Assembly: GCA_964035545.1 (NCBI GenBank)
Contig: OZ037768.1
Span: 24,647,319-24,711,318, forward strand
Source of the DNA: Bugula neritina
Lineage: Eukaryota > Animalia > Bryozoa
Reading direction: 5' to 3'
Length of the DNA stretch: 64,000 nucleotides
The position numbers and the translations under genes are program-made. Below the pieces are notes generated by a model that did not search any database, was not told the origin of the DNA, and saw only the letters and a program-made list of their open reading frames with translations. Within the stretch, counting starts at the first letter, position 1. The number at the start of each line of letters is the position of its first letter. This document shows positions 10,436-63,854 of this stretch, piece after piece.

Positions 10436-13400
10436 TCACTTCCTGTCCGTATACTCATAGAAGCCGACACTCCTGCGGTTAGTCCTGGAGAGCACGGAGA
10501 AAACACGCCCACCAGGTCGCGCCTTGTGCTTCCTCAGTCTGACCTGCTTAGCGTAAGAACTGGTGAGGTCAGGGGGAGACAATATCTTGTTGTAACTTGT
10601 CTCTAGAAGGGAGGAAAGACGGTCACGTAAACCGCTGACTTTCTCTAAGAATTGTGAGCTACCCAGACCTTTGGGAGACGAGTTCAACTCGTACATACTC
10701 CGGCATAGCCCTGACGAGTTGAGATGAGATGGAGAGGATAACTCTAACATAGACTGGGAGTGTAGACTGTAAGTAGAGTGACTAGTTAGGGGAGGAGGTG
10801 TGTCGCTGCCATAGAGAGTGCTAGGAGCCGCGTGTTCACTGAGACTGCTGCTGAGAGAGCTCGAGTCTGAAGATGTGTTGAGGTTTGGTGAACTCTTGAA
10901 GAAGTCTGGCTTTGAGCTCAGACGACCAGCTTTAACTGAGCTTACGCGACTGAAGTCAGCAAACAGTTCTAAAAACATGTCAAGTGTTTGTTTGCTGTTT
11001 TCATCGAGTCTTACCTTCACCTTTGAGAGTTCCTCGTCTGACCTCATGAGTTCTTCCTGCAACCAATAGAAACCCTTGTGACATTGTGTGTGACATTGTG
11101 TGTAACATAGTGTGTGACATAGTGTGTGGCATTGGGTGTGACATAGTGTGTGACATAGTGTGTGACATAGTGTGTGGCATTGTGTGTGACATTGTGTGCG
11201 ACATAGTGTGTGACATTGAGTGTGACATAGTGTGTGGCATAGAGTGTGACATTGTGTGTGACATCGTGTGTGACATTGTGTGCGACATAGAGTGTGACCT
11301 TGTGTGTGACGCATACTCAGTAGGGAATACTACATGAACTGCAGTAACAACACGCTAGCCCACTGACCTCTAAAGAACAAACTCTAGCTGACAGATTCTC
11401 GACCTCTACACTCTTTTGTGTCACATCCTTCACTTTCTCTTCATAACTCTGTGCCAGCTCTTCCAGGGCAGTCAGAATGTCACGGATTTCATCCTGTAGT
11501 CAGAGTATGTAGCATAGTTACTAGTATGTAGTATAGTTACTAGTATGTAGCATAGTTACTTGTATATAGTGTAGTTACTAGTATGTAGTATAGTTACTAG
11601 TATGTAGTATAGTTACTAGTACATAGTATAGTTACTAGTACATAGTATAGTTACTAGTACATAGTATAGTTACTAGTACATAGTATAGTTACTAGTATGT
11701 AGTATAGTTACTAGTACATAGTATAGTTACTAGTATGTAGTATAGTTACTAGTATGTAGTGTAGTTACTAGTACATAGTATAGTTACTAGTATGTAGTGT
11801 AGCTACTTGTATGTAGTATAGTTACTTGTAATAATAGTATAGTTACTAGTACATAGTCATTAGTACACAGTCACTAGTACCTTTGACTCAGAGTGGGTCC
11901 TAGTCATCTCCCTGTACTCCGACAGCACCAAAGTGTTATTCTGCGTCAGCGTCTGATTCTCAAGTTTCAATTCTCTTATTTGACTTTCCAAGCTGAGAAT
12001 ATCTCTGCTTCTTTCTTCCAGTTCATCATCCTAGTCAGTGAAATATACAGTGTAGATATAGTGTAGATACTGTGTAGATATAGTGTAGATATATACAGTG
12101 TAGATACAGTGTGTAGATACTGTGTAGATATAGTGTAGATACAGTGTAAATGCTGTGTAGATACTGTGTAGTTAGCATATACTATCTACACAGTATCTAC
12201 ACTATATCTACACTGTATCTACACTGTATATATCTACACAGTATCTACACTGTATATTACAGCATGTATATTACAGCATGGATATTACAGCATGTATATT
12301 ACAGCATGTATATTACAGCACGTATATTACAGCACGTATATTACAGCACGTATATTACAGCACGTATATTACAGCACGTATATTACAGCACGTATATTAC
12401 AGCATGTATATTACAGCATGTATATTACAGCACGTATATTACAGCACGTATATTACAGCACGTATATTACAGCACGTATATTACAGCACGTATATTACAG
12501 CACGTATATTACAGCACGTATATTACAGCACGTATATTACAGCACGTATATTACAGCACGTATATTACAGCACGTATATTACAGCATGGATATTACAGCA
12601 TGTATATTACAGCATGTATATTACAGCACGTATATTACCTTGTCATCGAGCTGTTGACACAGACTGGAGATGTCTCGTTGGTACTGAAGACACTCATCAC
12701 AGCTCTCTGTAGCAGGAGGTAGAGAATGGCTACGCTCTGTTGATGGAGGTAGAATATGTGTGCTCTCATATGCTGGAGGGAGTAAAGAGGGCATAGACAC
12801 ACAGGAAGTGAGAGAAGGGGAGGCAGAGGTTGGCACCACGTCGGGAGAGTTTTCTGTAAACAGGATAGGTGAGTCATACCTGTGAGAGGTGAGTCATAAC
12901 TGTGAGAGGTGAGTCATAACTGTGAGAGGTGAGTCATACCTGTGATAGGTGAGTCGTACCTGTGAGAGGTGAGTCATACCTGTGAGAGGTGAGTCGTACC
13001 TGTGAAAGGTGAGTCGTACCTGTGAAAGGTGAGTCGTACCTGTGAGAGGTGAGTCATACCTGTGAAAGGTGAGGGAGAAACTCTCAACTCATATTTTGTC
13101 AGCCTGGCTCTAAGAACTGAATTCTTCTCCTTTTCCTTCTCATATCTTCTCTTCCACTCCTCAGCTGTCAGCTCTTCATTGACTCTGATTTCATTCTTTA
13201 TGGTCTTGGCTCTGCATAATACATACTAACTAACATGTAATATATACGTACTAACATGTAATATATACGTACTATCATGTAATATATACGTACTAACATG
13301 TAATATATACGTACTAACATGTAATATATACTAACATGTAATATATACGTACTAACATGTAATATATACGTACTAACATGTAATATATACGTACTATCAT

Positions 13401-44402: not shown

Positions 44403-47400
44403 CTAGAGAGACGGGGCCGACCGATCGTTGACATTTACTGTCTTCTTTAGCCTCACCCCGCTGTGTATCTGTGAGAGTAAGGTGTTGCGGGGGGCAGAGG
44501 TGCCGACCCGACTGTTCTTCAAACTGTCCACAGCTGCTGGGAGTGGTCGCTGTGAGGAGGGCGGGGCAGGGGGACCCTCAGAGGTGCCACCCAGAGTCGA
44601 GTTGAGTTGAGCTAAGAAGTTTGTGTTTATTTTACTCCCTTTCTTAGAAAGAGTAGGCGGCGGGACGACTCCCTTAGAATTTAGTTTTGGTGACCGGGAG
44701 CCGGGCTGCCAGGGGGCAGCGGGATTCGTGTGCTGTTGGTGGTGCGGCACTGGAGTTGGGTGGAGAGTTGAAGCTGTGTGGGAGGGGGGCGGGAGGGGAG
44801 CCCCGTGATGAGAGACAGAGTAGGGTGGTGCTGGGGAGAGCTGACTGGTGAGATAGGGAGGGGCCGGAGAGTGCGGCAGAGGGGGTGGAAGATCACTGAT
44901 ATTGAATGGTAAGCTGCTGTCTGGCCTGGTGTCGGCTCCAAACTCCTCAGGGGGAGGTGGCAAAACGGCCGGATCAACTGGATGACAGGGTAAAGGCACA
45001 GCATAAGGATCTACAAACATGATATATTATATGATATGATATAATGTATCTATACTGAATATATGATGTATAGTGTATATTATACTGAATATATATGATA
45101 TATAGTGTATATATACTGAATATATATGATATATAGTGTATATTATACTGAATATATATGATATATAGTATATATTATACTGAATATATATGATATATAG
45201 TATATATTATACTGAGTATATATGATATATAGTATATATTATACTGAATATATATGATATATAGTGTATATTATACTGAATATATATGATATATAGTATA
45301 TATTATACTGAATATATATGATATATAGTATATATTATACTGAATATATATGATATATAGTATATATTATACTGAATATATATGATATATAGTATATATT
45401 ATACTGAGAATATGATATAGACTGAGTACCCTCATCATCGTGGTGGAGAATAGCCGGGGGAGGGGGAGAAGGGAAGGGCACACTGGAGCGACCATTATTC
45501 TTGCCATCAACAGCAGAGAGTCTAGGCTTAGGACTGAGTAGAGGAGGTTTAGAAGAGCGTTGGCTGGTGGGTCTGTCCACGGCACCGTTTATACTGGAGG
45601 ATACGGAGGAGGAACGGCGTACAGGAGGAGGTGGTTTGGTGTGTCCAGGTGGGTGTCTCATCAGTGCTTTACCTGCCCAGTTGACTACTTCTACACCTGC
45701 AGTGTGTTATAATATACAGAGTGTAGTATAATATACAGAGTATAATATACAGAGTATAGTATACAGAGTATAATATACAGAGTATAATATACAGAGTATA
45801 ATATACAGAGTATAGTATACAGAGTATAGTATACAGAGTATAATATACAGAGTATAATATACAGAGTATAATATACAGAGTATAATATACAGAGTGTAGT
45901 ATAATATACAGAGTATAATATACAGAGTATAGTATACAGAGTGTAGTATAATATACAGAGTATAATATACAGAGTATACAGAGTATAGTATACAGAGTAT
46001 AGTATACAGAGTATAATATACAGAGTATAATATACAGAGTATAGTATAATATACAGAGTATAGTATACAGAGTATAGTATACAGAGTATAATATACAGAG
46101 TATAATATACAGAGTATAGTATAATATACAGAGTATAGTATACAGAGTATAGTATACAGAGTATAATATACAGAGTATAATATACAGAGTATACAGAGTA
46201 TACAGAGTATAGTATACAGAGTATAATATACAGAGTATAATATACAGAGTATAATATACAGAGTATAATATACAGAGTATAGTATAATATACAGAGTATA
46301 GTATACAGAGTATAGTATACAGAGTATAGTATACAGAGTATAATATACAGAGTATAATATACAGAGTATAATATACAGAGTATAGTATAATATACAGAGT
46401 ATAGTATACAGAGTATAGTATACAGAGTATAGTATACAGAGTATAATATACAGAGTATAATATACAGAGTATAATATACAGAGTGTAGTATACAGAGTAT
46501 AGTACACAAATACCCGTTGCCTCTCTCTCCAACTCATTCACATGTTTGCCAGAAGCAGATTGGTGCGCTGGCTGCTGAAAGACAGGTGAGGGAGGAATAT
46601 GCTGATGCAATGACGGAGGTTTCCCCGTCTGTGACGTGTGGAGGGAGGCAGACTTAGCTGCGTGTACTTGCTTTGTGTGTATAGAATATGGTGTGTCTAC
46701 AAGAGGGAGAGGCATGAACAGTGGAATATGGAGCAATGCGTCTAGGAAATGGCGGTGTGGAGAAAACAAAAATAACAACAGAGAGAAGAACTACATAACA
46801 GACTAGCGACTCATCAACACACTGCAAAGTGATGACAACGTGGAAATCAAGTCGACTGAATAAGTAACTGATGGAGACGATGCAGTGAAATAAACAGCTG
46901 ACTAGTTGACTAACAGAATTCCCCTTACCTACGAGGATGAGAAGGAACTGAGTCTAGGCCTTGGAACTGGCCGAACTCTCACCACTACATGTACATGTAT
47001 ACACTATATACTGAGAGTATACCGAGAGTAACTAGAGAGTAACTAGAGAGTACACTGAGAGAGTAACTAGAGAGTATACTGAGAGTAACTAGAGAGTATA
47101 CTGAGAGAGTAACTAGAGAGTATACTGAGAGTACACTGAGAGAGTAACTAGAGAGTATACTGAGAGTAACTAGAGAGTATACTGAGTGGAGCTCATACCG
47201 TGTGTGACCAGCTGAACTTCCTCTGAGGCAGAAGAGTTGCTGGTAGTCGTGCCGTAGCCGCTAGAGCTAACTACAGATCGCCGACCGCTAGGCTCTCCCA
47301 GACAGTCATTGAGTGCTGCCGTACTCGCTTCCAACTCCTTGATGGCATCAGCCAGGGCATCGTTCTGTGCCTACAAATAGGGTGAAACCGACTTACAGAT

Positions 47401-50400
47401 GGTGAGAGATGACACGGTGACATTGGAGACGGGAGTCTAGATAGACTACTCAACAGCAAGATAACGACAACAGAGACTCCAGCATTCCAACTCAAACTGT
47501 ACTTCTCTGAAACAGGCCGAAACATTCTGAAGGTATTTGAGTGGAAATTTTCGACTGGAAAAAAAAGGTTATTCGGGCACCAAAATACAAATATATTATA
47601 AGATACATAGAACAATAACAAAAGATTGAAATAAATGAGAAATGAATTGAGCATGCAAGAGTGTGGAGTGCGGAGAGATGAGATGAGGAGAGATGAGGAG
47701 AGATGAGGAGAGATGAAATGAGGAGAGATGAGATGAGGAGAGATGAGATGAGGAGAGATGAGACGAGATGAGGAGAGATGAGATGAGATGAGACGAGGAG
47801 AGATGAGACGAGGAGAGATGAGATGAGAAGAGATGAGACGAGGAGAGATGAGGAGAGACGAGATGAGGAGAGATGAGGAGAGACGAGGAGAGATGAGATG
47901 AGGAGAGATGAGATGAGGAGAGACGAGGAGAGATGAGATGAGAAGAGATGAGATGAGGAGAGATGAGATGAGGAGAGATGAGATGAGGAGAGACGAGGAG
48001 AGATGAGATGAGGAGAGATGAGATGAGACGAGGAGAGATGAGAAGAGATGAGATGAGGAGAGATGAGATGAGAAGAGATGAGATGAGGAGAGATGAGATG
48101 AGGAGAGAGATGAGATGAGGAGAGATGAGATGAGATGAGGAGAGATGAGGAGAGATGAGATGAGGAGAGATGAGGAGAGATGAGATGAGGAGAGATGAGA
48201 TGAGGAGAGATGAGACGAGATGAGAAGAGATGAGATGAGGAGAGATGAGACGAGATGAGATGAGGAGAGAGATGAGATGAGGAGAGATGAGACGAGATGA
48301 GATGAGGAGAGAGATGAGATGAGGAGAGATGAGATGAGGAGAGATGAGATGAGATGAGGAGAGATGAGATGAGGAGAGATGAGATGAGGAGAGACGAGAT
48401 GAGGAGAGACGAGGAGAGATGAGACGAGGAGAGATGAGATGAGAAGAGATGAGATGAGGAGAGATGAGATGAGGAGAGACGAGGAGAGATGAGATGAGGA
48501 GAGATGAGGAGAGATGAGATGAGGAGAGATGAGGAGAGATGAGATGAGGAGAGATGAGATGAGAAGAGATGAGATGAGGAGAGATGAGATGAGAAGAGAT
48601 GAGACGAGGAGAGATGAGACGAGATGAGATGAGGAGAGACGAGGAGAGATGAGGAGAGATGAGATGAGGAGAGATGAGATGAGGAGAGACGAGATGAGGA
48701 GAGATGAGATGAGGAGAGATGAGATGAGGAGAGATGAGGAGAGATGAGATGAGGAGAGACGAGGAGAGATGAGACGAGGAGAGATGAGATGAGAAGAGAT
48801 GAGACGAGATGAGGAGAGATGAGGAGAGACGAGGAGAGATGAGATGAGGAGAGATGAGATGAGGAGAGATGAGATGAGAAGAGACGAGACGAGGAGAGAC
48901 GAGATGAGGAGAGAGTATAAAATAAGTAGATCTGCCAACTGCAAACATCGGCAATACATGCAGTAAGTTGCACATGAGATGAGAGACACGAATCAGTAAA
49001 GTAGTACGAGAACACCGGAGCTGTAGATGTGGTAGCAACTGTAAGGAGAAAGGGAGAGGGGAGAGGTTGTACTAAACTAACTGAACCAAGTTTGTCTACT
49101 GACTACACACAATACCCAACACCTTGCCTTTCTAACTAAGATATCACTGTCTGTGAGGCATTCTAGTGCTGCTGTCGATGCCTCCATTTCCTTGACAGCG
49201 GCAGCAATATTACTCCCCGTAGAGTAACGTCTGCACCTGGCCTGTAATGACTGCATAGTCAGCATTTCACTGAGTACTACTGAGTACTACTATCACACTG
49301 AGTACTACTATCACACTGAGTACTACTATCACACTGAGTACTACTGAGTACTACTATCACACTGAGTACTACTATCACACTGAGTACTACTACCACACTG
49401 AGTACTACTGAGTACTACTATCACACTGAGTACTACTGAGTACTACTATCACACTGAGTACTACTATCACACTGAGTACTACTATCACACTGAGTACTAC
49501 TGAGTACTACTATCACACTGAGTACTACTGAGTACTACTATCACACTGAGTACTACTATCACACTGAGTACTACTATCACACTGAGTACTACTGAGTACT
49601 ACTATCACACTGAGTACTACTGAGTACTACTATCACACTGAGTACTAGTATCACACTGAGTACTACTATCACACTGAGTACTACTTACTCTGATCTCTTC
49701 ATCTTTCGTGGTTGGAGGACGCATATTTGCAGCAGCTTGCTCCGAGACAGAGTCAGTCACCTTCACAGAGAGAGTCCCTCCTGCTTCTTCTTTTCGCTTG
49801 GCAGCAATTTTAGCAGCCAGTTCGTGTGTGTTCATATAGATAGGTTCAGCTGTAATATACAGAGAGTATATATAGATAGGTTCAGCTGTAATATACAGAG
49901 AGTATATATAGATAGGTTCAGCTGTAATATACAGAGAGTTCATATAGATAGGTTCAGCTGTAATATACAGAGAGTTCATATAGATAGGTTCAGCTGTAAT
50001 ATACAGACAGTATATATAGATAGGTTCAGCTGTAATATACAGACAGTACATATAGATAGGTTCAGCTGTAATATACAGAGAGTTCATATAGATAGGTTCA
50101 GCTGTAATATACAGACAGTATATATAGATAGGTTCAGCTGTAATATACAGACAGTACATATAGATAGGTTCAGCTGTAATATACAGAGAGTACATATAGA
50201 TAGGTTCAGCTGTAATATACAGAGAGTACATATAGATAGGTTCAGCTGTAATATACAGAGAGTACATATAGATAGGTTCAGCTGTAATATACAGACAGTA
50301 CATATAGATAGGTTCAGCTGTAATATACAGACAGTACATATAGATAGGTTCAGCTGTAATATACAGAGAGTACATATAGATAGGTTCAGCTGTAATATAC

Positions 50401-53400
50401 AGAGAGTTCATATAGATAGGTTCAGCTGTAATATACAGAGAGTATATATAGATAGGTTCAGCTGTAATATACAGAGAGTACATATAGATAGGTTCAGCTG
50501 TAATATACAGAGAGTACATATAGATAGGTTCAGCTGTAATATACAGACAGTTCATATAGATAGGTTCAGCTGTAATATACAGAGAGTACATATAGATAGG
50601 TTCAGCTGTAATATACAGAGAGTACATATAGATAGGTTCAGCTGTAATATACAGAGAGTTCATATAGATAGGTTCAGCTGTAATATACAGACAGTTCATA
50701 TAGATAGGTTCAGCTGTAATATACAGACAGTACATATAGATAGGTTCAGCTGTAATATACAGAGAGTACATATAGATAGGTTCAGCTGTAATATACAGAG
50801 AGTTCATATAGATAGGTTCAGCTGTAATATACAGAGAGTACATATAGATAGGTTCAGCTGTAATATACAGACAGTTCATATAGATAGGTTCAGCTGTAAT
50901 ATACAGAGAGTTCATATAGATAGGTTCAGCTGTAATATACAGAGAGTTCATATAGATAGGTTCAGCTGTAATATACAGAGAGTACATATAGATAGGTTCA
51001 GCTGTAATATACAGAGAGTACATATAGATAGGTTCAGCTGTAATATACAGAGAGTATATATAGATAGGTTCAGCTGTAATATACAGACAGTACATATAGA
51101 TAGGTTCAGCTGTAATATACAGAGAGTACATATAGATAGGTTCAGCTGTAATATACAGAGAGTACATATAGATAGGTTCAGCTGTAATATACAGAGAGTA
51201 CATATAGATAGGTTCAGCTGTAATATACAGAGAGTTCATATAGATAGGTTCAGCTGTAATATACAGAGAGTATATATAGATAGGTTCAGCTGTAATATAC
51301 AGACAGTATATATAGATAGGTTCAGCTGTAATATACAGAGAGTACATATAGATAGGTTCAGCTGTAATATACAGAGAGTATATATAGATAGGTTCAGCTG
51401 TAATATACAGACAGTACATATAGATAGGTTCAGCTGTAATATACAGACAGTACATATAGATAGGTTCAGCTGTAATATACAGACAGTACATATAGATAGG
51501 TTCAGCTGTAATATACAGACAGTACATATAGATAGGTTCAGCTGTAATATACAGAGAGTATATATAGATAGGTTCAGCTGTAATATACAGAGAGTATATA
51601 TAGATAGGTTCAGCTGTAATATACAGAGAGTACATATAGATAGGTTCAGCTGTAATATACAGAGAGTACATATAGATAGGTTCAGCTGTAATATACAGAG
51701 AGTATATATAGATAGGTTCAGCTGTAATATACAGACAGTACATATAGATAGGTTCAGCTGTAATATACAGACAGTTCATATAGATAGGTTCAGCTGTAAT
51801 ATACAGAGAGTACATATAGATAGGTTCAGCTGTAATATACAGAGAGTATATATAGATAGGTTCAGCTGTAATATACAGACAGTACATATAGATAGGTTCA
51901 GCTGTAATATACAGACAGTACATATAGATAGGTTCAGCTGTAATATACAGACAGTACATATAGATAGGTTCAGCTGTAATATACAGAGAGTACATATAGA
52001 TAGGTTCAGCTGTAATATACAGAGAGTATATATAGATAGGTTCAGCTGTAATATACAGACAGTTCATATAGATAGGTTCAGCTGTAATATACAGAGAGTA
52101 TATATAGATAGGTTCAGCTGTAATATACAGACAGTACATATAGATAGGTTCAGCTGTAATATACAGAGAGTATATATAGATAGGTTCAGCTGTAATATAC
52201 AGACAGTATATATAGATAGGTTCAGCTGTAATATACAGACAGTACATATAGATAGGTTCAGCTGTAATATACAGACAGTTCATATAGATAGGTTCAGCTG
52301 TAATATACAGAGAGTTCATATAGATAGGTTCAGCTGTAATATACAGAGAGTACATATAGATAGGTTCAGCTGTAATATACAGACAGTACATATAGATAGG
52401 TTCAGCTGTAATATACAGAGAGTACATATAGATAGGTTCAGCTGTAATATACAGAGAGTACATATGTACATATAGATAGGTTCAGCTGTAATATACAGAG
52501 AGTTCATATAGATAGGTTCAGCTGTAATATACAGAGAGTACATATAGATAGGTTCAGCTGTAATATACAGAGAGTACATATAGATAGGTTCAGCTGTAAT
52601 ATACAGAGAGTACATATGTACATATAGATAGGTCACTTACTTTCCATGAAAGGAACAGACGGCATGGCAACAGGTTTGGGCTTGGCGCGGGTTCTGGGAG
52701 GCGCAGAGCTTCTGGTGTTGGTGGTGCTGTTACGTCTGAGACTCTGGGAGGTGGTTGAGGAGGCGGAGCTGTCAATACTACTCAGTCTCTGGGGACGGGG
52801 TGGAGGACCCATGATCTCTCCTGCGAACAGAAGATATCAGTGTAGAATATACTAGTGTTAGATGTAGAATATACTAGTGTTAGATGTAGAGTATACTAGT
52901 GTTAGATGTAGAGTATACTAGTGTTAGATGTAGAATATACTACTGTTAGATGTAGAGTATACTAGTGTTAGATGTAGAATATACTAGTGTTAGATGTAGA
53001 ATATAGTAGTGGTAGATGTAGAATATACTAGTGTTAGATGTAGAATATACTAGTGTTAGATGTAGAATATACTAGTGTAAGATGTAGAACATACTAGTGT
53101 TAGATGTAGAATATACTAGTGTTAGATGTAGAATATACTAGTGTTAGATGTAGAGTATACTACTGTTAGATGTAGAATATACTAGTGTTAGATGTAGAAT
53201 ATACTAGTGTTAGATGTAGAGTAGACTAGTGTTAGATGTAGAGTAGACTAGTGTTAGATGTAGAATATACTAGTGTTAGATGTAGAACATACTAGTGTTA
53301 GATGTAGAACATGTCTTACCAGAGGCTCTACTAACGAGAGAGTTGGATCTATCGAGATGCTGACGCTGTAGACTGTTGGTGGGGAGAGAATGAGCGCTGC

Positions 53401-56400
53401 CAGAGTCGAAGTCATTGCTGCCTCTGCTGCCCTGACTGATACTGGAGTAAACACTGAGAGAGTCTGACTTTTCTTCCTCCAGACTGCCATGACCTCTCTG
53501 CTGCTGCTGCGACACAGTATATACAGTAACTATACACTGTATATACTAACTATACAGTGTATACTAACTATACAGTGTATACTAACTATACAGTGTATAC
53601 TAACTATACAGTATATACTAACTATACAGTATATACTAACTATACAGTGTATACTAACTATACAGTGTATACTAACTATACAGTATATACTAACTATACA
53701 GTATATACTAAGTATACAGTATATACTAACTATACAGTGTATACTAACTATACAGTGTATACTAACTATACAGTGTATACTAACTATACAGTGTATACTA
53801 ACTATACAGTATATACTAACTATACAGTATATACTAACTATACAGTATATACTAACTATACAGTGTATACTAACTATACAGTGTATACTAACTATACAGT
53901 ATATACTAACTATACAGTGTATACTAACTATACAGTGTATACTAACTATACAGTGTATACTAACTATACAGTATATACTAACTATACAGTGTATACTAAC
54001 TATACAGTATATACTAACTATACAGTACATACTAAGTATACAGTATATACTAACTATACAGTATATACTAACTATACAGTATATACTAACTATACAGTAC
54101 ATACTAACTATACAGTATATACTAACTATACAGTATATACTAACTATACAGTGTATACTAACTATACAGTATATACTAACTATACAGTATATACTAAGTA
54201 TACAGTATATACTAACTATACGGTGTTAATACGCAGTTAGAGGGGAAGCAGGTATAATAACACACCTTAGTGGAATCACTACGGCTGCCAATATGGCTGC
54301 CGGTATGCACAGCAGATCTACCAAACAAAGCGTCTTGTGAAGTGAAGCCAGAATCATGAGATGCAGCACTGAGTGAGCAGTTAATATTGGATGACTAAAA
54401 CATACGGTATACAGTATATGTGTATAGAGTATACAGTATATATGTATAGAGTATACAGTATATGTGTATAGAGTATAGAGTATATGTGTATAGAGTATAG
54501 AGTATATGTGTATAGAGTATAGAGTATATGTGTATAGAGTATACAGTATATGTGTATAAAGTATACAGTATATGTGTATGGAGTATACAGTATATGTGTA
54601 TAGAGTATACAGTATATGTGTATAAAGTATACAGTATATGTGTATAGAGTATACAGTATATATGTATAGAGTATACAGTATATGTGTATAGAGTATACAG
54701 TATGTGTGTATAGAGTATATAGTATATGTGTATAGAGTATACAGTATATGTGTATAGAGTAAACAGTATACACATATACTGTATATACTCTATACACATG
54801 CCTGGTGGTGCAAGGTTCATGCTGTACAGTAACATATAATACAAATAATAATAATAATAGTATAAAATAATAAAATATAATAATATAAAACACAAATACA
54901 TCTCAAATTCAGTGATATAAACGGAGTTCATGCAGGCTACTAGCTACTGTGCAAGGAAGTTTGGACTGTAAAGTATTGGGTTACTAGCTAATAGTCACTA
55001 GTCACTGGCTAATAGTTACTAGTTACTAGCAAGTAGTTACTAGCTAATATTTACTAGTTACTAGCAAATAGTCACTAGCTAATAGTTACTAGCTAATGGT
55101 TACTAGTTACTAGCAGCTAGTACGACTCACCTTCTGAGCTTGCAGCCGAGTGGCTGGCGAGGAGCTGCGCTGTGACGTAACGTCACTCTCAGTGGCGCTG
55201 ACCAGAGAGTTGATGCTGGAGGAGAGGCTGTGACGGTCTGACGTTGGTGAGTCAGGAGGCGTCTAGAAAATAAGAGGAGTCTAGAGAATAAGAGGAGGAG
55301 TCTAGAGAATAAGAGGAGGAGTCTAGAGAATAAGAGGAGGAGTCTAGAGAATAAGAGAAGGAGTCTAGAGAATAAGAGGAGGAGTCTAGAGAATAAGAGG
55401 AGGAGTCTAGAGAATAAAAGGAGGAGTCTAGAGAATAAGAGGAGGAGTCTAGAGAATAAGAGGAGGAGTCTAGAGAATAAGAGGAGGAGTCTAGAGAATA
55501 AGAGAAGGAGTCTAGAGAATAAGAGGAGGAGTCTAGAGAATAAGAGGAGGAGTCTAGAGAATAAGAGGAGGAGTCTAGAGAATAAAAGGAGGAGTCTAGA
55601 GAATAAGAGGAGGAGTCTAGAGAATAAGAGGAGGAGTGTAGAGAATAAGAGGGGGAGTGTAGAGAATAAGAGGGGGAGTCTAGATAATAAGAGGGAATGA
55701 AGCAGCGAGTCATGCGCTGAGATAGACAGGAAGTGAGAGGGTTCAAGCTGTGAATTGAAAATACACTTTCAGTTAAATATAAGAGGCAAATACAGCATGA
55801 CTTGTGGTATAAATCTGCACTCATTTCTGTGGCTTATTAAGGAAGATTCCAAATGTTAATTATAGGCTGTGGATTGCATACAGTGAAAGCATTACCAACT
55901 TATAAACGTGTGTTGAGAGCAAGTATTTGCACAATGCAGCAGCAGAGGCAGTAGTAATAGTAGTAGTGGTCGTCATAGTAGTAGTAGCAGGGTTGGGGTC
56001 AATTACATGTAAATGTAATTAATTACAATTACATGAAGATTTGTCAATTACAATTACAGTTAAAAAGTAATGTAATTAATTACAATTACAATTGCATGGT
56101 AACGTAATTAATTACAATTGCAATTACTTCTGTTCTCACAAGGGATAACTAAAAGTTATACAATATCACTTCTAGGGTCCAACTACCAGGGGCAATGTTG
56201 ACAGTGGTGAACCTCCTTTGTTCCCAACAGTGACACTACAGGGTCAATCCATGCCAAATCAACTAAATTTTAAGGGGTCCCACGTCTTTGCTTCTCAGAC
56301 TTTGCTCATATTTACACCAAATGGACCTACACATGTCCGAAGTACTATTCGTGAATATTTCTGACATGACACATAAACTTTTTGAGAAATGACTACTTTT

Positions 56401-57163
56401 GTGGACAAAGGCTGGGAAAAATGTTGAGGGAAATTTGTGATTTCTACTTTTAGACCTACTTATAAATGTCTATATCTGAACCATTTTTCTAGACTGAGCC
56501 TTAAAATTTGATGTGGGGAATATTTGAAATTTTTTTCAAAATTTACAAAAATTTGCCCATATTCAATGGCTTAGCATATATGCACACAAGGTATTCTGTA
56601 GTATGTGTTGCTACTAGTGCAAGTTGATAGGTATTATCAAATCGCACAGCAAATTTTAAGACTCAGTCTAAAAAAATGGTTGAGACATAGCTGGGTTTAT
56701 AAATTGGTCTAAAAGTAGAAATCACAAATTTTCCTTTAAGTTTTTTCCAACCTTTGTCCACAAATGTAGTCATTTCTCAAAAAGTTTTTTGTTGGGCCAA
56801 AAATATTTAAGAAGAGTAATCAAGACACATGTAGGTCTATTTGGTGTAATATGAACAAACTCTGAGACACAAAGGCACAGGTCCATTTGGTGAGTTAGCA
56901 TGGAATGACCCTATACGATATTGACTTAATCTGAACTTGTTATTTAACAGTAGATATGGTAGGAAAAGAATGATTTTTTCAAGATTTAAAAGTTTGAAGT
57001 AATTGACATGTAATTATAAAGTAATTGTAAAATTCAATTACATTAGCAATGTAATTAATTACAATTACATTTTTATACATCAATTACAAATTACATTCAA
57101 TTACTTGAAAAAATGTAATTAATTACAACCAATTACAATTACAAATTACAATTACTCCAACCC

Positions 57164-57244
<81 letters not shown>

Positions 57245-60200
57245 CTAGTAGTAGTAGTAATAGTAGTAACAGTCGCAGTAGTACTAGTAGTAGTAGTAGT
57301 AGTAGTAGTAGCAGTAGTAGTAGTAGTAGTAGTAGTAGTAGCCTCAGTACCTTAGGTTTGTACGAGTATGCTGAACTCTTGAGGTCATTGATGACCTGTT
57401 CACTGGACTCAGGCAGCGTGTCAGGGTCGGCAGCCAAGGCAGACAGGTGGTCTACTATCTCCTGCAGGTGTGCCACCTCATTCACCATGGCCATCTCGGA
57501 GTCCTGCAGGCAGATAATCAGAGTGTTTATAGAGACGGAGAAATAGACAAAGAGAGGGGGGCAACTTTACACTCACACAGTACACACTGACAGAGTGACA
57601 CAGTACACACTGACAGAGTGACACAGTACACACTGACAGAGTGACACAGTACACACTGACAGAGTGACACAGTACACACTGACAGAGTCACACAGTACAT
57701 ACTGACAGAGTCACACAGTACACACTGACAGAGTCACACAGCACACACTGACAGAGTCACACAGTACACACTGACAGAGTCACACAGTACACACTGACAG
57801 AGTCACACAGTACACACTGACAGAGTCACACAGTACACACTGACAGAGTCACAGAGTACACACTGACAGAGTCACAGAGTACACACTGACAGAGTCACAG
57901 AGTGCACACTGACAGAGTCACACAGTACACACTGACAGAGTCACACAGTACACACTGACAGAGTCACACAGTACACAACTGACAGAGTCACACAGTACAC
58001 ACTGACAGAGTCACACAGTACGCACTGACAGAGTCACACAGTACACGGAATAATGGATTGATTAGGAGATAGTTTGACACGGATATCTTGGTAGAAAAGT
58101 GTTGTGAAGAGAGATGTGCAGACACACAGACAGACACACATATGGACACACAGACAGAGACAGGAACTCACCACAACAGGTCTTAGGAAGCAGATGAAGT
58201 CACAGAAATGTTTCCTTTCTTCAACTAAGGCTTTCCTTACATAACTTTTCTCCATGTTTTCTAATGCTTTATATTTGTCAGTGACACCCAGCATAGCTGA
58301 TTCAAGCTGTTCACGTGTATCACCTTTACCTACAGTCAACACCCATAGAGTATGTAACACATGATAATACAGTCAACACCCATAGAGTATGTAGCATATA
58401 AAAATAATTGATTGAAAACTGGAAATGAAGTTGTCATCCCCATTTATTAGGCTAATGAAAGCATTGGATTAGGAGAAGCTGTTAGCACCCACAAGGAGGT
58501 GGGATGGAGCTGGCCACCTGAGAGTTAATAGTAAATGTGTCTGGGAAATCTGTTAGTATAATGAGCCAACGGCATTGGGTATAGCAGAGTGGGTATAGCA
58601 GAGTGAGTATAGCAGAGTGGGTATAGCAGAGTGAGTATAGCAGAGTGAGTATAGCAGGGTGAGTATAGCAGGGTGAGTATAGCAGAGTGAGTATAGCAGA
58701 GTGAGTATAGCAGGGTGAGTATAGCAGAGTGAGTATAGCAGAGTGAGTATAGCAGAGTGAGTATAGCAGAGTGAGTATAGCAGAGTGAGTATAGCAGAGT
58801 GAGTATAGCAGAGTGAGTATAGCAGAGTGAGTATAGCAGAGTGAGTATAGCAGAGTGAGTATAGCAGAGTGAGTATAGCAGAGTGGGTATAGCAGAGTGG
58901 GTATAGCAGAGTGGGTATAGCAGAGTGGGTATAGCAGAGTGGGTATAGCAGAGTGAGTATAGCAGAGTGAGTATAGCAGAGTGAGTATAGCAGAGTGAGT
59001 ATAGCAGAGTGAGTATAGCAGAGTGGGTATAGCAGAGTGGGTATAGCAGAGTGAGTATAGCAGAGTGAGTATAGCAGAGTGAGTATAGCAGAGTGAGTAT
59101 AGCAGAGTGAGTATAGCAGAGTGAGTATAGCAGAGAGGACATGGGCGAGAGAGAGAGCTGGAGAGTAGCTCACAGCAAGCAGAGGCGTGAATTGTATTAC
59201 TTACACTGACTGATGACTATCACTAGCAGGTACTATTAGTTAGAAGTAGTAGCAGAGCAGCAACTTACAGTATGTTGTTTTACCTTTGCGGCTTTTCTTC
59301 TGCAGTTTGAGGGTGTCAGAAGACGCCCTTTTGATATCACCTCTAACTTTCTTGTAGTCTACAGAAATAGACGGTATGCGTCAGTATGTAGTATGTGTCA
59401 GTATATAGTATGTGTCAGTATACAGTATGTGTCAGTATATAGTATGAGTCAGTATACAGTATGTGTTAGTATATAGTATGCGTCGGTATACAGTATGTGT
59501 CAGTATATAGTATGCGTCAGTATACAGTATGTGTCAGTATACAGTATGTGTCAGTATATAGTATGTGTCAGTATACAGTATGTGTCAGTATATAGTATGT
59601 GTCAGTATATAGTATGTGTCGGTATATAGTATGTGTCGGTATACAGTATGTGTCAGTATATAGTATGCGTCAGTATACAGTATGTGTCAGTATACAGTAT
59701 GTGTCAGTATATAGTATGTGTTAGTATATAGTATGCGTCAGTATGTAGTATGTGTCAGTATATAGTATGTGTCAGTATATAGTATGTGTCAGTATACAGT
59801 ATGTGTCAGTATATAGTATGTGTCAGTATATATTATGTGTCAGTATATAGTATGTGTCAGTATATAATATGTGTCAGTATATAGTATGTATCAAACATAT
59901 AGTCACACTAAGAGTGAAAGCATGAAGACCTGCAACCAAATGCTAACCATTGCTATATTAACCAATGCTATACTAATCATTGCTATTCTAATCATTGCTA
60001 TGCTAACCAATGCTATGCTAACTAATGTTATGCTAACCATTGCTATGCTAACTAATGTTGAGCTAACCATTCTAGAGTTGTGTGTATTACACACACACAA
60101 GGTATTACTAGTTATTGGTAGCTCTGATAAATTAATAACAAACCTATTGTATTGTTTAATTGTACCGCTCATTAGCAAAATAATGGAGCACACAGCTGGC

Positions 60201-63200
60201 TGGCTTCAGGCAGGCGGGTGTATAATTATACAGGGTATACTTATACACATATACTATTATACAGAGTATACTTATACACATATATTACTATAGAGAGTAT
60301 ACTTATACACATATATTACTATACAGAGTATACTTATACACATATATTATTATACAGAGTATACTTATACACATATATTATCATACAGAGTATACTTATA
60401 CACATATATTATTATACAGAGTATACTTATACACATATATTACTATACAGAGCATATGCATATATTATGTAGGGACACCTTTAGCATGGTCTTTATCTAT
60501 TGTCACAGTGTTTCTTTTCCAATCTTCTAACTTTTCTTGCAGAGGAACAGCTAATTCTTCTAGCAAAGAACTACAAACCAACCATATATATATAACGATA
60601 GAGTAGTTAGAGAGAGAGAGAGAGTTGATATAGTATATATAATGATAGAGTAGTTAGGCTGCTAGCTCAGGTGGACATGAAATGAAGATGTAAGAAATAA
60701 TTGAGAGGAGAGAATGAGAGAGGAAATAGTTGAGTGACACGGCATTTAGCAGGCACGTATGCTGGTATATATACTGTGTATTGTAGTAGATATATACTGT
60801 GTATTGTAGTAGATGTATACTGTGTATTGTAGTAGATATATACTGTGTATTGTAGTAGATATATACTGTGTATTGTAGTAGATGTATACTGTGTATTGTA
60901 GTAGATGTATACTGTGTATTGTAGTAGATATATACTGTGTATTGTAGTAGATATATACTGTGTATTGTAGTAGATATATACTGTGTATTGTAGTAGATAT
61001 ATACTGTGTATTGTAGTAGATATATACTGTGTATTGTAGTAGATATATACTGTGTATTGTAGTAGATGTATACTATGTATTGTAGTAGATATATACTGTG
61101 TATTGTAGTAGATGTATACTGTGTATTGTAGTAGTAGATGTATACTGTGTATTGTAGTAGATATATACTGTGTATTGTAGTAGATATATACTGTGTATTG
61201 TAGTAGATATATACTGTGTATTGTAGTAGATATATACTGTGTATTGTAGTAGATATATACTGTGTATTGTAGTAGATATATACTATGTATTGTAGTAGAT
61301 ATATACTGTGTATTGTAGTAGATATATACTATGTATTGTAGTAGATGTAGTATATTGATATGGGTGGAGAGAAAAGCAAGGGGAGTATGTTAAAGGGGGA
61401 GTGTAGTACACAGGGGGAGTGTAGTACACAGGGGGGAGTGCAGTACACAGGGGGGAGTGTAGTACACAGGGGGAATGTAGTACACAGGGGGGAGTGTAGT
61501 ACACAGGGGAGAGTGTAGTACACAGGGGGGAGTGTAGTACACAGGGGAGAGTGTAGTACACAGGGGAGAGTGTAGTACACAGGGGGAGGGGAGTGTAGTA
61601 CACAGGGGGGAGTGTAGTACACAGGGGGGGGGGGAGTGTAGTACACAGGGGGGAGTGTAGTACGCAGGGGGGGGGGGAGAGTGTAGTACACGGGGGGGGG
61701 GGAGGGATATAGAGAAAGTGAGTGGCTTTTATTGATCTGATTTTAACTTTGATTTGACATCAGCTATAGACGGTATGAAATCTGGTGTGATTGAGATGAG
61801 ATTAATTAGGTGTGGAGCTGGGAGAGAGGAGTGGAGCTGGGAGAAAGGTGTGGAGCTGGGAGACAGGTGTGGAGTTAGGAGAGAGAGGTGTGGAGCTGGG
61901 AGAGAGGTGTGGAGCTGGGAGAGAGGTGTGGAGCTGGGAGACAGGTGTGGAGATGGGAGAGAGGTGTGGAGCTGGGAGAGAGATGTGTGGAGCTGGGAGA
62001 GAGATGTGGAGATGGGAGAGAGGTGTGGAGCTAGGAGAGAGGTGTGGAGCTGGGAGAGAGGTGTGGAGCTGGGAGACAGGTGTGGAGTTAGGAGAGAGAG
62101 GTGTGGAGCTAGGAGAGGTGTGGAGCTAGGAGAGAGGTGTGGAGCTGGGAGAGAGGTGTGGAGCTGGGAGAGAGGTGTGGAGCTGGGAGAGAGGTGTGGA
62201 GCTGGGAGAGAGAGGTGTGGAGCTGGGAGAGAGGTGTGGAGCTAGGAGAGAGATGTGGAAGGTATACTAAACAGACTTCCCCAGACCTACTGGTGAGATT
62301 ATCTGGTGACCAGAAGAGAGCCATCATAATGCGACTAAAAGGAAGATTAGTGAATGAGCTTAACAGAGATGTACTTAGTATATGGTAGTTAGTATCTAGT
62401 AGTTAGTATGTAGTAGTTAGTATGTAGTAGTTAGTATGTAGTAGTTAGTATGTAGTAGTTAGTATATAGTAGCTAGTATGTAGTAGTTAGTATGCAGTAG
62501 TTAGTATGTAGTAGTTAGTATATAGTAGTTAGTATGTAGTAGTTAGTATATAGTAGTTAGTATATAGTAGTTAGTATGTAGTAGTTAGTATGTAGTAGTT
62601 AGTATGTAGTAGTTAGTATGTAGTAGTTAGTATGTAGTAGTTAGTATGTAGTAGTTAGTATGTAGTAGTTAGTATGTAGTAGTTAGTATGTAGTAGTTAG
62701 TATGTAGTAGTTAGTATATAGTAGTTAGTATGTAGTAGTTAGTATGTAGTAGTTAGTATGTAGTAGTTAGTATGTAGTAGTTAGTATGTAGTAGTTAGTA
62801 TGTAGTAGTTAGTATATAGTAGTTAGTATATAGTAGTTAGTATGTAGTAGCTAGTATGTAGTAGTTAGTATGTAGTAGTTAGTATATAGTAGTTAGTATG
62901 TAGTAGTTAGTATGTAGTAGTTAGTATATAGTAGTTAGTATGTAGTAGTTAGTATGTAGTAGTTAGTATGTAGTAGTTAGTATGTAGTAGTTAGTATGTA
63001 GTAGTTAGTATGTAGTAGTTAGTATGTAGTAGTTAGTATGTAGTAGTTAGTATGTAGTAGGTGGTGCGGAAAGGGTGGAGGTGAAGGGGAGGGGGAGGGG
63101 GAGGGGGAGGGGGAGGGGGAGGGAGAGGTGAAGGGGGAGGTGGAGGGGGAGGTGAAGGGGGAGGGGGAGGGGGAGGGAGAGGTGAAGGGAGAGGGGAGGG

Positions 63201-63854
63201 GAGGGGGAGGGGGAGGTGGAGGTGGTGATGGAGTACAAGTATGAATGGTAGGATAAACAGTGTAAACAGAAGAGTAGAACTCAGTAATTACTCTGTCAAG
63301 CGTGTAAACTATGCATTCACAGTATCATCAATATTATTATTATACAATAAACAGTGTGACAGGTGTCAGGGCATAGCACCTGTGGGCTGTGACCCCACTG
63401 TTATCTCAAGGTCACTTGTATTGCAGGTAAAGGAATGTTGACCTCAGGTTCTGTGAAACATCATGATACAGCAACATAGACAGTGTAGATATATAGGTGT
63501 AGATATATAGGTGTAGATATATAGATGTAGATATATAAGTGTAGATATATAGGTGTAGATATATAGGTGTAGATATATAGGTGTAGATATATAGGTGTAG
63601 ATATATAGGTGTAGATATATAGGTGTAGATATATAGGTGTAGATATATAGGTGTAGATATATAGGTGTAGATATGTAAGTGTAGATATATAGGTGTAGAT
63701 ATATAGATGTAGATATATAGGTGTAGATATATAGGTGTAGATATATAGGTGTAGATATAAAAGACTTACTTGGCATACACCTTCATCTTGCTTTCAATAC
63801 TTCTGTGCCTTAAGCAGAGCCTTGTGAGAGATTTACCGATTTCTTTGGTAGCAC
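44403..63854 (-). CDS. MTSS1: MTSS1/MIM-like I-BAR (IMD) + WH2 protein, 5'-partial. Exons 63854-63770, 60570-60479, 59358-59284, 58329-58172, 57503-57351, 55262-55131, 53506-53320, 52820-52641, 49849-49689, 47370-47199, 46696-46514, 45696-45430, 45010-44403
   Basis: IMD: GATKEIGKSLTRLCLRHRSIESKMK, LQEKLEDWKR..IDKDHAKDYKKVR..SSDTLKLQKK, VRKALVEERKHFCDFICFLRPVV, ADPDTLPESSEQVINDLK. Also TPPDSP, SSSGYGTTT, KPPPPVRRSSS and the C-terminal WH2 LLSQIHSGVRLKKTVNVNDRSAP. Phases are consistent. Confidence 0.92.
45050..46505. repeat. MTSS1 intronic repeats: 27-nt ATATTATACTGAATATATATGATATATAGT-type (45050-45415) and 13-nt TATAATATACAGAG-type (45710-46505)
   Basis: Visible periodicity. Confidence 0.9.
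47676..48915. repeat. 1.2-kb purine-rich repeat (GAGAT)m GAG; pyrimidine-rich on the MTSS1 sense strand
   Basis: Almost only G/A on the plus strand; source of the ISSLL/SSHL ORFs. Confidence 0.95.
49123..49241 (-). CDS. Putative alternative (duplicated) MTSS1 exon ARCRRYSTGSNIAAAVKEMEASTAALECLTDSD...
   Basis: Phase-0 acceptor ttacag|GCC; the peptide parallels exon 47370-47199 (ADAIKELEASTAALNDCL). The 3' boundary is uncertain. Confidence 0.55.
49268..49683. repeat. Intronic repeat CACTGAGTACTACTATCA (with or without CTGAGTACTA)
   Basis: Visible periodicity; palindromic AGTACT core. Confidence 0.92.
49831..52632. repeat. 36-nt repeat (about 77 copies) made of the MTSS1 3' splice site plus the first exon codons (minus: TCTCTGTATATTACAG|CTGAACCTATCTATATG[T/A]AC)
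   Basis: Visible periodicity; the terminal copy is the acceptor of exon 49849-49689. Confidence 0.96.
52840..54770. repeat. MTSS1 intronic repeats: 22-nt TAGAATATACTAGTGTTAGATG (52840-53310), 18-nt TATACTAACTATACAGT(G/A) (53535-54225), 20-nt TATAGAGTATACAGTATATG-type (54408-54770)
   Basis: Visible periodicity. Confidence 0.9.
55263..55690. repeat. 21-nt repeat (about 20 copies) copying the acceptor of MTSS1 exon 55262-55131 (minus: TATTCTCTAG|ACTCCTCCTCT)
   Basis: The real junction is TATTTTCTAG|ACGCCTCCTGA. Confidence 0.9.
55988..57165. mobile_element. Non-autonomous hAT-type element (ends CAGGGTTGGGGTCAATT / AATTACTCCAACCCTG; 8-bp flank AGTAGTAG) inserted in a (TAG)n tract
   Basis: Terminal inverted repeats, subterminal AATTAC arrays at both ends and matching 8-bp flanks. 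The TSD is ambiguous because the target is a microsatellite. Confidence 0.8.
56239..56913. mobile_element. Nested foldback MITE (Tc1/mariner-like, TA-flanked) with about 280-bp inverted arms
   Basis: TA|CAGGGTCAATCCATGCCAAATCA ... TGAGTTAGCATGGAATGACCCTA|TA; long internal arms are reverse-complementary. Confidence 0.75.
57166..57341. repeat. (TAG)n microsatellite
   Basis: Direct observation; source of the poly-Leu ORF extension. Confidence 0.95.
57575..59890. repeat. MTSS1 intronic repeats: 22-nt ACAGTACACACTGACAGAGTCAC-type (57575-58045), 15-nt GAGTATAGCAGAGT-type (58568-59135), 18-nt CAGTATATAGTATGTGT-type (59380-59890)
   Basis: Visible periodicity. Confidence 0.9.

Follow-up and report, generated by a model that had tools for sequence, protein, structure and literature searches.

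The window analyzed here, a stretch of 64,000 nt on contig C4, ~84 kb short of the contig end, carries on its minus strand most of a gene that is, on domain and ortholog matches, the bryozoan MTSS1/MIM (I-BAR/IMD and WH2). Exon 7 matches Pfam IMD (E 3.8e-10), and the nearest full-length relative is the Watersipora subatra protein P0001, which has both IMD and WH2 and matches the last exon at its C-terminus; the MTSS1 identity proposed in a first-pass annotation of the sequence is thus supported by both domains. We mapped 18 exons, with exons 1-3 located 2-3 kb past the window end. The exons were searched separately and joined only computationally for the frame and stop check, in which the frame stayed open over 930 aa, or over 968 aa when a cassette exon was included. 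This in-frame cassette exon (49128-49241, minus strand, 114 nt, GC donor) resembles the beginning of the exon that follows (E[ML]EASTAAL) and has 79-82% protein identity to stretches of the matching introns in L024, a genomic contig from a second relative, and in Watersipora, where the stretch (L022 40998-41111) likewise has a GC donor. The Watersipora RefSeq protein P0001 lacks the corresponding residues; the exon is conserved and apparently an unannotated alternative one. The features on which the analysis turns are given below, where X5 and X9 are RNA runs from two studies and X14 is a DNA run from a sample other than that of the assembly.

44403-63854, minus strand: part of MTSS1/MIM inside the window, exons 4-18 (tblastn with P0001, exon table, Pfam IMD).
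55254-55694, minus strand: second acceptor-copying array, in intron 8, with a 21-nt unit and 17 upstream acceptor-like copies (repeat and frame scan).
52641-52820, minus strand: MTSS1 exon 12, 180 nt, ending in phase 1 (covered entirely by X5 and X9 RNA contigs, joined to exon 11).
52634-52640, minus strand: 5' splice site, the sole 7 intron nucleotides without array origin (the same 7 letters open the L024 intron; the RNA departs here).
52594-52633, minus strand: truncated first unit, equal to the last 40 nt of the 44-nt unit and ending in the first acceptor copy (sequence identity).
52461-52468, minus strand: 8-nt insertion that puts four donor-proximal acceptors out of frame (acceptor and frame scan).
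49833-52633, minus strand: 36-nt minisatellite with 77 acceptor copies and three variable sites (repeat and acceptor scan; units also in X14 DNA).
49850-49868, minus strand: the acceptor in use, which is the last copy (RNA loose ends run from exon 12 into unique exon-13 sequence).
49689-49849, minus strand: MTSS1 exon 13, 161 nt, with a single conserved EPIYMN (RNA contigs, ortholog alignment).

Intron 12 spans 52640-49850 on the minus strand (2791 nt), and a 36-nt tandem repeat fills 99% of it (TRF: period 36, 77.1 copies, 96% matches). Each unit comprises 19 nt of intron end and 17 nt of exon-13 start, so that the acceptor copy, ATTACAG followed by the start of exon 13, recurs 77 times on the minus strand, with first exon bases running from 52593 to 49849; the YAG and its upstream tract are kept in 77/77 units. 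The 73 acceptors from 52441 to 49849 form one stop-free frame with exon 13, a potential addition of up to 864 aa, and the four donor-proximal acceptors lie beyond a single 44-nt unit, from where reading runs into a stop. The distance from the donor to the first acceptor is 47 nt, made up of the 7-nt donor and a 40-nt piece found unchanged in the 44-nt unit. These counts, the spacing of the first acceptor, and the 8-nt insertion with its four out-of-frame acceptors had all been reported in the first-pass annotation and were confirmed by our acceptor and frame scan; its acceptor sites were also correct, with positions numbered one base high (the G of AG had been counted). In composition, the array is an ordered mosaic of six 36-nt unit types, defined by the three variable sites, and one 44-nt unit. 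A search of the 216-Mb assembly with the 36-nt unit returned 77 matches, all in the array, and none outside intron 12. Short contigs of the array unit, in several variants, were present in the X14 DNA, and since this is another sample, the array is real and no assembly artifact.

The acceptor used in mRNA was determined from Logan contigs, which drop rare variants, and not from raw reads, with four runs mapped onto exon 12 and the first 81 nt of the intron (a 281-nt stretch). One of them, X20, from a related species, gave no aligned contig and carries no weight either way. X5 and X9 each yielded one mRNA contig that covers exon 12 and departs from it at the donor; the X5 contig is 1956 nt long, unbroken and at depth 364, and the X9 contig has 443 nt at depth 91. 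In both runs, the 30 loose letters past exon 12 continue through the shared 17 nt and then into sequence unique to exon 13, which corresponds to the junction 52641>49849. Neither a joint from exon 12 to an array unit nor a contig that was part exon and part array was found among the X5 or X9 contigs, from which rare forms drop out, and at its mRNA depth of 91, X9 contained no array contigs at all. The X5 RNA and the X14 DNA come from the same sample, and X14 carries array units; the last acceptor was therefore chosen in an animal possessing the decoys. The RNA contigs show the last acceptor to be the main form in mRNA, encoding a protein with one EPIYMN, and, together with the orthologs, they bear out the proposal that the spliceosome picks the last of the 77 sites. 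Between the RNA alleles and the assembled sequence, 3-5% of exon-12 sites (52641-52820) are different, which suggests high polymorphism or cryptic species. The array itself is common to alleles across this 3-5% exon divergence.

Two other modes of splicing were considered for the array. Tandem alternative acceptors producing a coding VNTR ladder would give junctions into several copies, and only the last acceptor was present in the contigs, from which rare variants drop out. Recursive (ratchet) splicing, for which an AG is followed by GT, was rejected, as every AG in the array is followed by CT and regenerates no donor.

We compared intron 12 with the orthologous introns of the two relatives. 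The Watersipora ortholog, with 66% identity to exon 12, has an intron of 802 nt at the same position and phase, non-repetitive and with one acceptor, and L024 has an intron of 345 nt, again at the same position and phase and with the same seven donor letters. On these alignments, intron 12 is ancestral and not created by duplication, and intron gain by tandem duplication was rejected because the intron is present in both Watersipora and L024. The first-pass annotation had inferred expansion of a tiny ancestral intron from a 13-nt match between intron start and exon start; the match is real, but the exon-like 13-mer is absent from both orthologous introns, whose ordinary lengths argue against a tiny ancestor, and nothing supports a tiny intron specific to this lineage. 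The first 47 nt of intron 12 read best as the truncated edge of the array. In L024 (660-763), a small degenerate 27-nt repeat lies just 5' of the acceptor of the orthologous intron, with the acceptor excluded.

A single copy of the tyrosine motif was identified in three orthologs (P0001, P0005, and P0155). The pattern [PH]-[IV]-Y-x-N (49833-49847, minus strand) also recurs once in the distant MIM proteins P0063, P0081, P0083, P0116, P0128, P0132, P0142, and P0151, where the surrounding region is poorly conserved. The single P-[IV]-Y-x-N of invertebrate MIM is probably an old and functional tyrosine-phosphorylation/SH2 site, whereas its multiplication is probably neither old nor functional. Protein searches, which were length-limited and therefore give a weak blank, returned no full-length protein of this species and none with repeated units.

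The array of intron 12 lies in a repeat-rich setting. Tandem repeats were identified in 17/17 MTSS1 introns, making up 33-99% of their length, compared with 4% of the Watersipora gene. Over 248 kb (the window and 184 kb of flank), 43% is tandem repeat, and 79 of the 206 arrays with a period of at least 10 have a period divisible by three; nearly every intron in this region has its own unrelated minisatellite. The repeat load rises toward the contig end, from roughly 0.25-0.38 at the left extreme to as much as 0.65 closer to that end, and its elevation is possibly subtelomeric. In the intron-8 array, each copy is in phase and meets an in-frame TAG after 5-6 codons, so that only the last copy can be productive, and the ortholog junction corresponds to that last copy. 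Further candidate AG-bearing arrays adjoin exon-like frames beyond the window at +94394-94876, +80487-80674, and -97339-98081 (window-extended coordinates), with more to the left of the window, ~20 kb and 55 kb from its start; next to these putative exons, some arrays are open and some contain stops or frameshifts. A 20-nt array at 12867-13073 has a plus-strand unit with a donor-like AG/GTGAGT. A targeted literature search returned no bryozoan report of minisatellites across all introns, including junction-seeded ones. Private minisatellites in every intron, some of them junction-seeded, are more unusual than the intron-12 locus itself and are a property of the genome.

We consider it likely that the array is a neutral or nearly neutral minisatellite grown from the intron-12/exon-13 junction, with normal splicing to the last copy. 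Growth would have started when 19 nt from the end of the intron and 17 nt from the start of the exon were duplicated locally in tandem; the short match ATATG[T/A]AC, which occurs on either side of the AG, is the probable seed of this duplication. Slippage or unequal exchange may then have enlarged and homogenized the array, which, judging from the outgroups, would have replaced the older intron body except for the 7-nt donor. Since the AG and the pyrimidine tract are alike in all copies, the spliceosome most likely chooses by downstream context. Exon definition probably provides this context, as only the last AG precedes a purine-rich exon body (59% purines vs 39%) and a strong donor 161 nt away. 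Because splicing proceeds to the last copy, mRNA and protein are normal. One point against this account is that the first-AG scanning model predicts use of the proximal copy; last-copy use is unexpected under that rule and expected under exon definition. Intron 12, with 76 locally identical decoys 5' of the used site, is thereby a natural substrate for 3' splice-site choice.

Leaky splicing, with low-level use (a few per cent) of the one to three upstream acceptors nearest the true site and hence minor in-frame isoforms that lack regulation or function, appears unlikely, although several observations fit it. Locally, the array copies cannot be told apart from the true acceptor; use of the next few upstream copies would make exon 13 197-269 nt long, in keeping with the exon sizes of a gene whose internal exons reach 267 nt; minor forms would be hidden in contigs; and array-unit contigs are present at low depth in X5. 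By rough estimates, this X5 signal would represent ~1.4% of transcripts if it were all spliced in and spread over the array, and could reach ~1/4 if two-unit isoforms were its source, in which case a junction contig would be expected to be visible. However, neither X5 nor X9 has a contig leading from exon 12 to a unit, the mRNA contig is unbroken, and the array contigs of X5 have no parallel in X9. The X5 library is metagenomic and random-primed, and its array contigs are more simply read as pre-mRNA or carried-over DNA.

Regulated choice among the 73 in-frame acceptors, adding n tyrosine motifs to MIM and tuning SH2 recruitment, was the other option raised in the first-pass annotation, and we regard it as highly unlikely. 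The 73 acceptors do lie in a single open frame, and extra copies of a P-[IV]-Y-x-N conserved across invertebrate MIM could in principle signal. An open frame, however, is most likely the product of a period divisible by three and chance, with 22% of the junction duplications simulated at the gene's own acceptors being in frame and open, and the sister array in the same gene is full of stops. The units fit the described EPIY(M/I)(Y/N) motif, but the Grb2-type pY-x-N attributed to them is kept in few: the 72 extra units read EPIYMY (39), EPIYIY (17), and EPIYMN (16), so that 56/72 lack the Y-x-N consensus. The array shows no sign of coding constraint, although its three variable sites are too few for a test; all three are non-synonymous, synonymous variation is nil, and the sole indel breaks the frame. 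With a GRAVY of +0.61 and 23% aromatic residues, the peptide encoded by the repeat is hydrophobic and rich in aromatics, in contrast to the disordered, polar host region (GRAVY -0.74, 3% aromatic), where it would probably make a poor SH2 scaffold. The array is absent in the relatives, the length-limited searches found no repeated-unit protein, and the single junction 52641>49849 in the RNA contigs, where rare forms drop out, is the result that the first-pass annotation had itself set against tunable isoforms. Use of upstream acceptors under regulation in an unsampled stage or zooid type, or at levels below contig detection, giving MIM a variable number of 12-aa tyrosine units, has equally little probability in our estimation. 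If real, such a dial would be a new route to variation in protein length, but the evidence speaks against it. That the array arose in assembly, a reservation of the first-pass annotation, is the least probable reading of all, since short contigs cannot confirm the array length but its ordered mosaic of six unit types and the several-variant unit contigs in the independent DNA run X14 contradict it.

The EPIYA repeats of CagA are translated and vary between strains. The MTSS1 motif has the four letters EPIY in common with them, whereas the extra MTSS1 copies are intronic by the RNA contigs, have EPIYMY or EPIYIY as their usual reading, and belong to a hydrophobic unit. The likeness to CagA drawn in the first-pass annotation is superficial, as the motif is the single conserved P-[IV]-Y-x-N of invertebrate MIM and most units lose the N.

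Closer parallels were identified among boundary-spanning duplications. The human F7 IVS7 37-bp VNTR spans a boundary, and its identical pseudo-sites are functional yet silent, with the exon-adjacent copy used (PMC1557585); the MTSS1 array is likewise a boundary-spanning minisatellite with the exon-adjacent copy in use, on the acceptor side rather than the donor side. In human CBS 844ins68, an intron/exon acceptor junction is duplicated, and the distal copy is strongly favored, giving normal mRNA (PMC2630376). The MTSS1 array shares the duplicated acceptor junction and the favored distal copy, and differs in having 77 copies where the CBS polymorphism, a single one, has two of 68 bp. The amphioxus "mirages" are minisatellites across exon-intron boundaries in Adh3 and the globins BflGb6 and BflGb9, with units of 10-72 bp in Adh3 (PMC3087553). 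Mirage units are homogenized and keep their AG signals, and BflGb6 repeats the 3' end of an intron with the 5' part of an exon, with RT-PCR suggesting normal splicing (PMC3087553). The MTSS1 array, like BflGb6, copies intron end and exon start, and its 36-nt unit falls inside the 10-72 bp range given for Adh3. It differs from the amphioxus cases in phylum, in copy number (77 vs 3-6 in BflGb6), in making up 99% of its intron, and in its open frame. Every mirage feature tested was found at intron 12: a boundary-containing, head-to-tail unit that is private to the locus and homogenized, a splice signal that is kept, and regular splicing that is undisturbed, with the true-exon copy used in the X5 and X9 contigs, which drop rare forms. 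Among boundary-spanning minisatellites, the intron-12 array belongs to the known mirage type, of which it is a large representative.
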